Origin: Trichosphaerium sp. ATCC 40318 | Lineage: Eukaryota; Protista; Tubulinea | Direction of reading: 5' to 3' | Assembly: GCA_038496445.1 (NCBI GenBank) | Contig: JALMLS010000307.1 | Span: 48,922 to 112,921 of the forward strand | DNA length: 64,000 bases | Shown: one piece after another, positions 15,842 through 20,418 of the stretch | Position numbering within the stretch: the stretch's first letter is position 1 | How the letters are laid out: every line of letters starts with the position of its first letter | The notes under the pieces: generated by a model | What the model saw: only the letters and a program-made list of their open reading frames with translations | Told to the model about the DNA's origin: nothing | Database searches by the model: none | Made by a program: the position numbers and the translations under genes

Positions 15842-17908
15842 TCAAGGAGCACTAAAATAATGGCGATTCTTCCCGTGGCATCATTGCAGAAGTATTGTAA
15901 CCTGAATACATTAGAAATAGAGCGTCAATCACAAAGATATACCCCTTGGTTGAAGGCCATCATGGCGATCACTTAGAGTTCTTGCAAGACTGAGAATATT
16001 TTTAGGTGAACTTCTGAAATCCTTTGATATCATCGAGGCTAGACTCTGCAAGTCACCACGCCACCTTATTAAAATAGCTATTAGAACTGAAATGTCATAA
16101 AGTAACCGCTAGTTACCAGTAAGGCACCGTGACTAGTGTAATCCCTATCTGTGCGCATAGGTCCGCTTTCTCGACGTCACGTGCAGTCCTTGCAGTAGCT
16201 GGTAACCCTTCGACAAAAACGTTGTCATTAAAATGCTGTTCTCCTAGGTGAAAGCATTATTACAACAGAGTTCAGACAATAAACTCTAGAGTAAAGACAA
16301 GCGAACCTTGGTATTCAAGGGCAAGATTATATGCTCCAACAAATACATCAACGACCATTACAGATCCTGTAGAGTGTAATGTACCAAGATAATGCTCTTC
16401 TTCGACATGACAACCTTCGAATAAACGGCGCACTTGAGACAACAAGATATTCTGCATCGCCTTCTTCCCTGACATTCCAAACCTTGACCACTGCCAATTA
16501 AACTGAGGATCAATCAGCTGTAGAGCTAACGGATAGTATCTCATAATTGATCTACCACCGACACCCAGAAGCTGCTTTGTTGACACCCGATACCTAAACA
16601 TCAAATAAATAACAAGACGTTAGAGAGAGGGAGTAAGAAGAACTAGTGACGTGCCATGATTCCATTGAGTTTAGACCAAGATCCAAAGAAGCTTTTTTCA
16701 AAAAATTGCTTTGATTTACAGGATGCTGCCAGTACCCACGTGTAATAAATTTCCAGTTATACTCAGGGTATGCAAAGGTAATTGCTTTGTATATTGATCC
16801 TTTGAAACTTCGACATGATTAACATCAATGACTACCTTCAAGAGCTTTTGGACGTACACCTTTAGAACATTTTCACCTCCAAAATTTTTGATATCTGCCT
16901 TTGACATTCTGTACCAATCCTCAGCTTGCTTGATTGAAGCTCTCTTACTAATATTATCCATAATTATACGAACTTGCTTCCATTCAGTATCATCACATTG
17001 TAATACTGGTTTCATTCTAGGAACCAACTGAGTTGACAATCTTGAAACGTATAATTTTGTTCTGAACCCAAAAATTGGTGTAAAACTCTTTTATTTCTTC
17101 ACAATAGGGATAGAAAGCCAATAAAAAGTATACTTAATAGATAGTAAACTTGTCCGTACTTTTACCTTTTGATATCAAAAAGGCCTTGAGGGCTAAAGCT
17201 GAAGAGAACAAAAAAAACAAACAGAAAAGAAATACGAAAAAAAAAAGAAAAAAACTTACTTGACAAAACGAGATTGAACCCAATCATAGTCAGGATACGC
17301 AGCACTGACTAACCCATACACTCTGTAATCATGTCTATAAGATAACAACAGTTAAATAAAGGTCAACAACCCAAAGATAACGATAAATATGTTAGTACTT
17401 CTTAAGGAGAGATGCACCACCGACACGCTTGATATCAGCTGTTGTGACATTGTACCAATCTGATAATGTCTTGACACTTAATTTTAATCCAATAATCATG
17501 TTTGAAAACCTTGTAGTGTACTTTGATGTACGTTTTAGAGCTATTGGCGAGTTTCTTCGTTTGAATATTAACCAGATGCTTTTAGAGTGGCTATAACGTT
17601 ACCTAAAGCGCCATTGGTCCCATACTGCTTCTGGAAATACGTCTACGAGCATTGCGTGCATGGAATTTGAATACCTGGCGTTAAACTTGCTAACAATACG
17701 AGGCGTACTGGTTAATTACATTACCACCTCCATGGCGATGTATTTGTCTGTGTGTACAACCATACCAATCATCTCGTGTTTTTATTCCTTGTTTTCGCGC
17801 TTTGACGCCTATTAGCACAACCTCATAGAACCTTAGTTGCGTACCAACACTCTCAAAGAAAAGGCGTTTTGCAGTAAAACCATTTAACAAACCGGGTGGG
17901 ATTGCCAT
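15842..17908 (-). CDS. Tandem ~75-aa Trp-rich repeat protein (4 repeats) with C-terminal Vsr/DUF559-like PD-(D/E)XK nuclease domain (gene A)
   Basis: Spliced: FFESVARKQGIKTRDDWY...VFPEAVWDQWRF; LSVKTLSDWYNV..GGASLL..AYPDYDW; IKQAEDWYRM..AYPEYNW; GYWQHPVNQ..SMESWYRV. Nuclease: VMVVDVFVGAYNLALEYQGEQHF...RDVEKADLCAQIGITLVTVPYWW. Includes a GC-AG intron at 16594-16654. The 3' end is tentative. Confidence 0.8.
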
Positions 17909-18051
17909 TTACGTCTTTTCCTCACGAACAAGCGTTTACCTGGTTGCCAAATGAGACAGCACAAGAATTGAGTCAAAGTTAGTTCAACAACGCTAAAATC
18001 GTATACACTGCTTCTTTTACAACGTTCCGCAATTAATGTAAACCTTGTACA
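17909..18051. promoter_or_regulatory. Putative bidirectional promoter of the repeat-nuclease pair
   Basis: 143 bp separate the divergent ATGs at 17908 and 18052. Confidence 0.55.
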
Positions 18052-20418
18052 ATGTCAACGATGACAGCTGCAAGAACAACGCTCAACTACTATAATAATC
18101 CATTAAAACGGATCAAAAAAGCACCTGTAGATGCATGGGATAAGCATAGGGACAATATGGACGCTTTGGGTGAAAAACTAAATGTCACGCATTTAGACGG
18201 TTGGTATACATGCAAATGGGCAGAATTAGCGTCAGAAGGGCTTCCTGGTTTATCTACACTACAACCGTTAGTAATACCAACGTCAAACTACCTCTAACTT
18301 GCTTTATAGGCACAGTAAATCAAAATTAGCGCTATTAAATAGCGCATACCCTCAACACAATTGGAAACCCTTAAAACTCAAGTAAAAACGCTGTATTACT
18401 AACAACGACGCTAATAAAAGCTCTAGTGAACGACCAAAGGGGTATTGGAACCAAAAAACTCATCACCTACAGAAACTAGACGAGATTGCTGAATCAATGA
18501 ATGTGAAGCATCTTGACGACTGGTACAAAGTCACTCTCACAAAGATTCGTGCTCTTGGAGGGTCAAATGTCACTGACAGGTAATCTACAACCTCACCTCA
18601 TATCTACAGACCTTAACAATTTGTTAGATATGGTGATAGATTGGTTGACACCTTAGAGGGCTTGTATCCAAGTCATACTTGGATTCCTTGGAAGTTTGAG
18701 TACGGTTTTTTTTTATTGAAACGAAGTCTCATGTGTTTGTATTACTAGAGTGGCTCCTCCTGGTTATTGGGATAGAGTCAAGCATCAAAGGAAAAGGATG
18801 GAAGATATAGGTGAGCTATTGAAGTTCAAGACGATGGATATGTGGTACACTATGGCTTTTGACGATATTGTAAGCCTTGCTGGTACTTTCTTTAGCAAGT
18901 AAGTATTTTACTTAACGTCTCACATGTGTCGTGACATGCCTTTTTGAACTTTTTTGGTCTCATTTTTGTAAACAAGAGTGTATGGTGGATCGATGTATAC
19001 CACGATGGTCAATGTGTATCCAGAGATAGATTGGCAACCATGGAGGTTCTAGTAAGCATAGTAATCATTGAAACCAAGAAAACACTCCTTTTTTTTTTTG
19101 TCTTCAAGAGTTCGTTGAACTGATGAGAACTTTCCTTAGTCAGGTTCCAAAAGGTTATTGGGATATTATCGAAAATCAATTATATCGTTTTGACAGCTTA
19201 GCTGAAAGTCTTAACGTGAAAGAACTTGATGATTGGTACAAAGTAAAACATGAACAAATACTACAATCAGGCGCATATGGAATGCTCCAAAACAAGCACA
19301 ATTCATCGCTCTCAAGAGCTTTGACATCCCTATACCCAAAGCATAATTGGTCCTTCAAGTACGTATTATACTTTGGAAATAAAAAAATTACGCACGTGAC
19401 ATACAAAAGTCATCAAAAACTGCACTTTCACAGCTTCATTCTTGTTGGTCACTTTTCTTGTTTACTTTTTTGAAACTCATGTTCCATTAGGACTCGATTA
19501 GCTCTATACTACTGGCAAGATACAGAAAATCAACTCAATTTTCTGACAAGAGCCAAAGACAAGCTCAAAATCAACAAACTCGAAGACTGGTACAGCCACT
19601 ACTTTCAACAAAAACCAAAATCTGACGGGTTTTTTTGCATAACAGGTACCGCGTGGGTGCCTCACATTTGAAGCAGATTGGCGGTGCTGGTGTTGTGCAT
19701 TACTTTCCGCGTATGCTACAGATACTAGATCCTACATTCAATTGGGACTGGTCCTTGTTTTCTATAAGCAGTGCCAAGAAGGCAACACAGAGGTATCAAA
19801 CAAACATAACAATATTTTAAAAAAGATTTCTGAAACTCTAACTTCTCTTTTTCCAAATAGGCTACTGATTGCTTGTATCAAAGATATGTTCAGAGACCAT
19901 ATTGTTCTTGAAGAACATAGTGTTGGTATTAAACATACATCGGGCCTACAATTGGTCGTAGATGCTTTCTTGCCAAGTCTAAACTTAGCAATTGAATACC
20001 AAGGTAATTACGAACCCAAAAAAAAAGGAAAATTCTACATTGCTCAAACGCATCAAACTCAGGAGTCCTTATCCATTCATAGGTGAGCAACACTATCGTG
20101 ATCTAGTATATCATACTACTCCAACGGTTTCTATACAATACAAAGACCAAGAGAAGCTACAAAAGTGTCGTAACCACGGTAACCTCTTTTTCTGGTTTTT
20201 TTGCGTGAAAAAACTAATAAATTTATGTTTTTAAAGGTATCGACTTGATTCAAGTGCCATATTGGTGGAAGGGTGATGTTATTGGTCTTGCATCAATTAT
20301 AAGACATCAACGTCCAGATTTGTTGGAAGAATACAGTCAACATGCAGGACTATCTGAACTTGAGCCTGGTGCCAGCAAGATATTGAATCTAATGGCGCCA
20401 CATCAACTCAACTGCTAA
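18052..20418 (+). CDS. Tandem ~75-aa Trp-rich repeat protein (5 repeats) with C-terminal Vsr/DUF559-like PD-(D/E)XK nuclease domain (gene B, 12 exons)
   Basis: Repeats ERPKGYW..LDDWYKV..LYPSHTWIPWKFE (75 aa), VAPPGYW..MDMWY..VYPEIDWQPWRFY (75 aa) and QVPKGYW..LDDWYKV..LYPKHNWSFK (73 aa). Nuclease LVVDAFLPSLNLAIEYQGEQHY...KDQEKLQKCRNHGIDLIQVPYWW. Stop TAA 20416-20418. Confidence 0.85.

Follow-up and report, generated by a model that had tools for sequence, protein, structure and literature searches.

Gene B, on the forward strand of a 64,000-nucleotide (nt) stretch of the Trichosphaerium sp. ATCC 40318 genome (contig JALMLS010000307.1; this whole stretch is called the window below), encodes five consecutive helical units of about 75 amino acids (aa) followed by a predicted nuclease domain. 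Its first nine introns are all in phase 2 and recur at a small number of positions within and between the units. This layout is not special to the locus, as it is common to most of the sampled members of the family to which gene B belongs. The phase-2 exon layout is probably a relic of inherited gene structure, left over from the copying of units. The idea that exons are skipped or swapped today in order to diversify the specificity of the array finds no support here, and several of the results described below speak against it.

Phase-2 introns in gene B and its paralogues

The region that holds gene B and its neighbour, the paralogous gene A, is eukaryotic, with short GT-AG introns and a G+C content of about 38%. 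Gene B contains 11 introns of 43-132 nt, all of them GT-AG, and phases counted from cumulative exon lengths are 2 for introns 1-9 and 1 for introns 10 and 11. The original prediction had claimed nine consecutive phase-2 introns, and these are confirmed by the full 12-exon model, as are the lengths that had been proposed for exons 2-7 (Table 1), each of which is bounded by an AG acceptor and a GT donor. In a unit alignment with split codons marked, introns 1, 3 and 5 share one common mid-unit codon, and introns 2, 4, 6 and 7 lie at unit ends, at the codon directly ahead of the next 'VP.GYW'. The alignment thus bears out the further claim that the first seven introns fall at repeat ends or at one fixed mid-repeat position. 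Intron 8 splits the W|Y of the last unit. The 153- and 150-nt exons encode helices 1-4 of a unit (the N-half), the 72- and 75-nt exons encode helix 5 and the YP..W.PW.F tail (the C-half), and the 219-nt exon 7 encodes one entire unit. Every exon from 2 to 9 has a length that is a multiple of 3 nt (3n). Equivalent phase-2 junctions had also been proposed for gene A, and all of them (INQ|YSN, RFR|NSP, LKK|HDY, FVN|FSP and LKV|FKG) were reproduced in that phase; the same is true of the W|YRV intron that is common to the last units of both genes, which has a GC donor in gene A. The splice sites of both genes were compared with profile A2, which consists of 32 uninterrupted homologues from other organisms. 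Spliced gene B aligns with this profile from end to end (E 1.5e-134), as does spliced gene A (E 2e-99), and in neither case are there gaps at the junctions. The splice sites are therefore supported independently by homologues in which the coding sequence is uninterrupted.

The layout was followed through the family in a census of 46 non-redundant paralogous loci of the same genome, all outside the window. Six-frame fragments were searched with a hidden Markov model (HMM) of the unit (72 states, in the coordinates of exon 7), and at each break between adjacent HMM matches all GT/GC-AG solutions were scored with the HMM and a simple splice score. This pipeline recovers eight of the eight gene B array junctions exactly. 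Phase 2 was found for 245 of the 261 array introns in the census, with nine in phase 1 and seven in phase 0. These introns cluster at three sites, which are the unit boundary (100/106 in phase 2), codons 50-56 (about 100 introns, with one exception to phase 2) and codon 33, the W|Y site (27/27 in phase 2), and both the unit alignment and the HMM coordinates indicate that intron positions are homologous between units. The mid-unit intron is absent from 41 of 41 last units. Among high-margin junctions, for which the best solution stands at least 10 score units above any solution in another phase, 177 of 186 are in phase 2. Internal array exons are 3n in 189 of 213 cases and, as in gene B, lengths of 72 nt (40 exons) and 153 nt (23 exons) occur most often. 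All introns are in phase 2 in 31 of 43 arrays, and at one locus (L032) nine phase-2 array introns alternate between mid-unit and boundary positions in the order seen in gene B. Census introns are 37-383 nt long, with a median of 58 nt. As a control, a profile of the nuclease domain was run through the same pipeline. Here 62 of 63 introns are in phase 1, and the two sites that they occupy are again fixed (EYQG|EQH and G|I); it follows that phase 2 is forced neither by the method nor by the genome.

Introns are also missing from many of the positions in the census, with 96 units continuous over codons 45-60 and 40 boundaries uninterrupted. Two loci go further, as L021 has one array intron and L022 none; in both (L021:2345-3472 and L022:2010-3203, each on the minus strand), four to five units are encoded in one uninterrupted open reading frame (ORF). 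Both loci may have arisen as retro-copies or by the loss of introns on a large scale. At L046:1108-1827 (minus strand) and L053:1663-2046 (plus strand), some introns are 3n and stop-free, e.g. EYQG[...]GEQHY, and ORF finders read through them. Introns of this kind are invisible to stop-based exon detection, and their retention would add in-frame insertions to the protein.

Origin of the exon layout

A unit that is copied in register inherits the positions and phases of its introns, and as the unit length has to be a multiple of 3, the exons between homologous introns are automatically 3n and symmetric. The nine phases of gene B amount to about three independent facts, namely the unit boundary, a codon in mid-unit and the W|Y site; the count rises to four ancestral positions unless the intron that follows the last unit is a boundary intron that has shifted. 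As independent events, nine consecutive phase-2 introns would lie far beyond chance, but they are copies of about three positions and are not independent. From the layout, its spread through the family, the differing phase of the nuclease-domain introns and the lack of recently copied units, an order of events can be proposed. The ancestral unit of this lineage would have been about 225 nt long and would have carried a phase-2 intron in the linker ahead of 'VP.GYW' and another at about codon 52. Tandem duplication of this intron-bearing unit would have built the inner array, and gene duplication would have carried the layout to hundreds of paralogues, in which strong divergence and the loss of single introns followed. 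Gene B is a typical, intact member of the family, and its splicing is probably constitutive.

Unit exchange and recent duplication were examined in a comparison of 146 inner units from 48 genes. The most similar pair of inner units is 56% identical and the median identity to the nearest neighbour is 43%; with no pair above 56%, there is no sign of recent duplication or exchange. For 9 of 146 units versus 2.4 expected, the closest unit belongs to their own gene, and eight of these nine neighbours are adjacent units, which is a signal of old tandem duplication. On the unit tree, last units form a nearly clean group (5 label changes versus 37 in shuffles), while positional labels of inner units give 34 changes versus 33.7 in shuffles and 54 versus 52.6. 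This pattern fits a founder gene whose inner units were near-identical when the family expanded, or later turnover of units, and the data do not separate these two. Gene A and gene B show the same pattern on a small scale, in that their last units alone pair clearly (0.50) and their inner units are too diverged to show either conservation of order or shuffling. The nearest partners of N-halves and C-halves are concordant in 1/32 versus 5/48 cases, a test that is powerless at 38-51% identity. As for unit order across paralogues, last units keep their position, whereas inner units lack positional orthology. The stitched arrays contain 3-8 units, mostly four (23 arrays), five (18) or six (4).

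Relatives from other lineages have different gene structures. A scan of metagenomes with the family alignment yielded 80 loci, and most of the arrays lie in a single ORF without introns, although the search pattern spans EYQG|EQH and is biased against copies with that intron. Introns that do occur in such relatives can also be periodic. In L081:596-1956 (plus strand, contig Ga0154020_10011605), unit-periodic 'LG|I' introns are found near codon 24 in phase 1 or 0 and further periodic introns, 'AL.|.YPE', near codon 63 in phase 0, while L078 has introns near codon 46/47 in phase 1. Since the L081 layout uses other positions and phases, periodic intron layouts have independent origins in different lineages within the family. 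When units from all sources are placed on one tree, the inner units of this genome stand apart from the metagenomic ones (17 label changes versus 64 in shuffles) and last units group across all sources (17 versus 52), a signal that may be partly technical because the HMM was made from units of this genome and base composition differs by source. These data agree with a history in which a founder unit specific to this lineage gained introns, after which first the unit and then the gene was amplified. The finding that relatives are either intronless or have other periodic positions suggests independent rebuilding or homogenisation of arrays in different protists.

The original prediction had proposed that whole or half repeats encoded on symmetric cassettes can be skipped, duplicated or swapped in frame, by alternative splicing or intronic recombination. 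Its arithmetic is correct, as array exons that are all 3n and flanked by phase-2 introns can be removed or duplicated without loss of frame, and past unit duplication is the best explanation of the pattern; diversification of this kind in the present day is the part that is unsupported. Recurrent recombination within introns is a rather unlikely explanation of the layout. Here, unequal crossing-over or ectopic exchange in the phase-2 introns would repeatedly add, delete and swap whole or half units, both inside one paralogue and from one to another, and the layout would be the working substrate on which arrays diversify over evolutionary time. The range of array sizes, the positional orthology of the last unit but not of inner ones and the excess of adjacent nearest neighbours in the same gene could all be explained in this way, and the periodic intron positions peculiar to L081 and L078 point to arrays that were rebuilt or homogenised after intron gain. 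Nonetheless, the low identity among inner units means that no recent event is visible in the 48 genes, the comparison of N-halves with C-halves is the powerless test mentioned above, and duplication in register needs no introns; intronless relatives have four to six units too. Parallel gain, in which introns would have been inserted independently into each unit at the same sequence-defined sites, by way of a proto-splice site or an introner-like element, is somewhat less probable still. It would make the periodicity a matter of insertion preference rather than descent, and it draws on the mostly intronless relatives outside this genome and on periodic positions that differ between lineages. 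However, a search for an AG|G proto-splice motif at the intron sites found none on the exon flanks, where just 16-19% of the exons at mid-unit and boundary sites end in AG, and for the same position and phase to recur in about 100 units each, hundreds of introns would have had to insert in parallel.

Regulated alternative splicing, by which symmetric exons or exon pairs would be skipped or chosen to give isoforms with different sets of units and thus target diversity at the RNA level, is highly improbable as the explanation of the layout. Any skip within the gene B array would remain in frame, and if a C-half were skipped together with the next N-half, a chimeric yet complete unit would result. 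A single exon is a different matter. In a model of the exon-7 unit, the boundary intron lies in the linker between units, while the mid-unit intron cuts one compact domain between helix 4 (46-52) and helix 5 (57-64), so that a lone exon is not a structural module and a whole unit needs an exon pair. Introns as short as those of gene B and of the family favour intron definition, and with short introns exon skipping is expected to be rare. In a survey of 65 eukaryotes that sampled amoebozoans, exon skipping was less frequent than intron retention in every species except one, and skipping was found mostly with long introns (PMC6142364). Intron-free paralogues exist, and diversity is already supplied by the hundreds of paralogues. 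It is equally hard to credit that the layout is in use at either level, so that in-frame skipping or recombination of whole units, or of exon pairs made up of a C-half and the N-half after it, gives several arrays with different combinations of units per gene or gene pair; if true, this would amount to the combinatorial re-aiming of a nuclease in a protist.

The reading of the layout as a relic of unit copying has points against it as well. The splice junctions are deduced from sequence and homology, and the census pipeline scores introns that are 3n and lack an in-frame stop as uninterrupted. Three or four array positions are all in phase 2 and both nuclease positions are in phase 1, for which the chance, if the positions were independent, is about 0.01-0.1 depending on the background, a mildly unusual agreement and a far weaker one than nine introns in a row would imply; the phase shared by the array positions leaves room for some selection for symmetric exons. 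The lack of positional orthology among inner units of paralogues also fits later turnover of units or star-like divergence.

The repeat-nuclease family and known systems

The repeated unit follows the pattern 'P.GYW..N....L....LDDWY.V....I..GG..LL..Y..S....L...YP...W.PW.F', and the last of the five units in gene B, as of the four in gene A, continues into the C-terminal domain. The family defined by these 75-aa helical units together with a Vsr/RAP-type nuclease domain is large and unnamed. In the 70-megabase genome, a one-unit query gave 1209 first-look candidates, and 150 of the 150 that were scored match; with a query that joined the last unit to the beginning of the C-terminal domain, candidates numbered 529 and matches at E <= 0.001 numbered 167. 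When an uninterrupted paralogue ORF was compared with a library of 1.84 billion proteins, 5597 cluster representatives matched at E <= 1e-3 and 716 at E <= 1e-30. The motif 'EYQGxQH' or a close variant occurs in 74 of the best 150 library matches, nearly always about 100 residues or less from the C-terminus. Ten cluster members were looked up, and the one entry with a name among them is a 'hypothetical protein'. Pfam returned nothing useful for the translations of nine gene B exons, and for the ORFs of L021 and L022 and 13 homologues it returned just sub-threshold partial matches to Myb_Rap1 or CH. The Myb_Rap1 matches in P0004 sum to 44 bits, yet no single stretch passed. The Pfam models RAP, Vsr and DUF559 gave no match on exon pieces, paralogue ORFs or full-length homologues. 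The ESM Atlas gave nothing beyond amoebozoan clusters without a name, at 0.87 or below, and one weak DUF4046 row, and a profile search of PDB sequences with A2 gave nothing credible.

Structural models were more informative for the C-terminal domain than for the unit. An AlphaFold model of the exon-7 unit, with 22 paralogous units as the alignment, has a predicted local distance difference test (pLDDT) score of 90.8 and five helices (10-23, 29-34, 37-43, 46-52 and 57-64), but comparison of this model with the PDB (Foldseek, VIA-align) yielded no clear fold, as the best hits reach no more than E=3, for a SAM domain, and Z 4.0. The model of the full-length homologue P0064 (pLDDT 88) has a C-terminal alpha/beta domain. 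This domain superposes on two RAP proteins of the Toxoplasma gondii mitoribosome with Z 10.7 (9i05_Xr; root-mean-square deviation (rmsd) 3.6, 107 aligned) and 9.8, on Vsr (1cw0_A) with Z 9.6 (rmsd 2.9, 104 aligned), on I-Bth0305I (3r3p_B) with Z 9.3 and on the RAP module of FASTKD4 (9gek) with Z 9.0. Six residues (D380, E391, Y392, G394, H397 and D414) do not vary among 32 homologues and K417 hardly varies, and genes A and B carry the matching residues of the nuclease domain (D, E-Y-x-G-x-x-H and D-x-x-K). The C-terminal domain of the family is a Vsr/RAP-type PD-(D/E)xK nuclease domain as judged from the fold of the P0064 model, to which gene B is aligned through the same profile, and its activity is predicted.

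The arrangement of gene B belongs to a known kind, that of repeat genes with symmetric exons in one phase, on which Patthy's exon-shuffling rules bear; it represents the less common 2-2 class, with two exons per unit. Like the class 1-1 modules of animal extracellular proteins, the ankyrin and leucine-rich repeat genes with one repeat per exon, and collagen, it has introns of one phase that bound the repeats and 3n exons that keep the frame upon duplication or deletion of a module, and tandem exon duplication explains all of these. Such genes are covered by the literature on exon-phase symmetry (e.g. PMC3632108). It differs from the animal modules, which are dominated by class 1-1, in its phase class, and from symmetric-exon repeat genes in general in that each unit consists of two exons split inside a folded domain, that the host is a protist with short introns, and that the layout is present in most sampled members among hundreds of paralogues. 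At the protein level, RAP and FASTK-type proteins (OPR-RAP, HPR-RAP and FASTKD1-5) likewise consist of helical repeats followed by a C-terminal Vsr-type PD-(D/E)xK domain. Their repeat, however, is a helical hairpin of 35-40 aa, as opposed to a five-helix unit of about 75 aa, and here the Pfam RAP model has no match and the residues D...E-x-x-G-x-x-H...D-x-x-K are conserved. In a published HMM screen, RAP proteins went undetected in Amoebozoa (PMC8190603). Vsr endonuclease and the Vsr-like homing endonuclease I-Bth0305I superpose on the C-terminal domain of the homologue model; in contrast to them, the domain has no match to the PDB at the sequence level, is fused to an intron-rich eukaryotic repeat array and is known here from sequence and model.

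The family thereby offers a clean and very large example of periodic introns in one phase, in that roughly 250 inferred phase-2 introns of the 46 paralogues sampled occupy three fixed sites next to a domain with introns in phase 1. Its exon layout can be used as a marker of how and when repeat-nuclease arrays were built in this lineage. By itself, the layout shows no mechanism of diversification, and the biological interest lies in the protein family.

A few relatives stand out among the homologues. P0002, a JGI metagenome protein, is AT-rich and has the same repeat units, preceded by an N-terminal motif that is presumably of the GIY-YIG type. P0003, also a JGI metagenome protein, ends at its C-terminus in the motif 'FEYHGDFWHGNP', which we take to be Vsr-like. 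The repeat array is thus joined to different nuclease heads in these two proteins, possibly in giant viruses. P0010 (NCBI MCP4659821.1) is a 586-aa family member deposited as 'MAG: hypothetical protein [bacterium]'; in a family that otherwise looks eukaryotic, it is probably from a mis-binned eukaryotic or viral contig.

Gene A and feature coordinates

Gene A and gene B are divergent paralogues with about 28% identity overall. Because their start codons are so close together (Table 1), they probably share a bidirectional promoter region. The introns of gene A are in phase 2 seven times, then in phase 1 and then again in phase 2. Its third unit is degenerate and has an additional exon of 33 nt, and its intron 1 is merely 34 nt long. 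The GC donor of its W|YRV intron (16594-16654, minus strand) reads GCACGT. GC-AG introns account for 11 of the 261 census introns, six of them with the GCACGT donor, and by these counts the genome seems to use this donor type regularly.

Table 1. Features of genes A and B, in positions of the window
Feature	Position	Strand	Description
Gene B	18052-20418	+	12 exons, 540 aa, single open frame; five ~75-aa helical units, then predicted Vsr/RAP-type nuclease domain
Gene B, exons 1-6	18052-18266, 18310-18381, 18427-18579, 18628-18699, 18749-18898, 18977-19051	+	
Gene B, exons 7-12	19140-19358, 19491-19589, 19646-19792, 19861-20003, 20083-20178, 20237-20418	+	
Gene B, symmetric (2-2) array exons 2-7	18310-19358	+	72, 153, 72, 150, 75 and 219 nt
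Gene B, phase-2 introns 1-5	18267-18309, 18382-18426, 18580-18627, 18700-18748, 18899-18976	+	
Gene B, phase-2 introns 6-9	19052-19139, 19359-19490, 19590-19645, 19793-19860	+	
Gene B, phase-1 introns 10 and 11	20004-20082, 20179-20236	+	inside the nuclease domain
Gene B, last unit	19491-19792	+	W|Y split at unit codon 33; position-specific unit type across the family
Gene B, nuclease domain	19861-20418	+	predicted; VVDAF...AIEYQGEQHY...KDQEK...VPYWW
Spacer between the divergent start codons of A and B	17909-18051	.	143 nt
Gene A	15929-17908	-	head-to-head paralogue of gene B; 10 exons, 465 aa, four units and predicted nuclease domain

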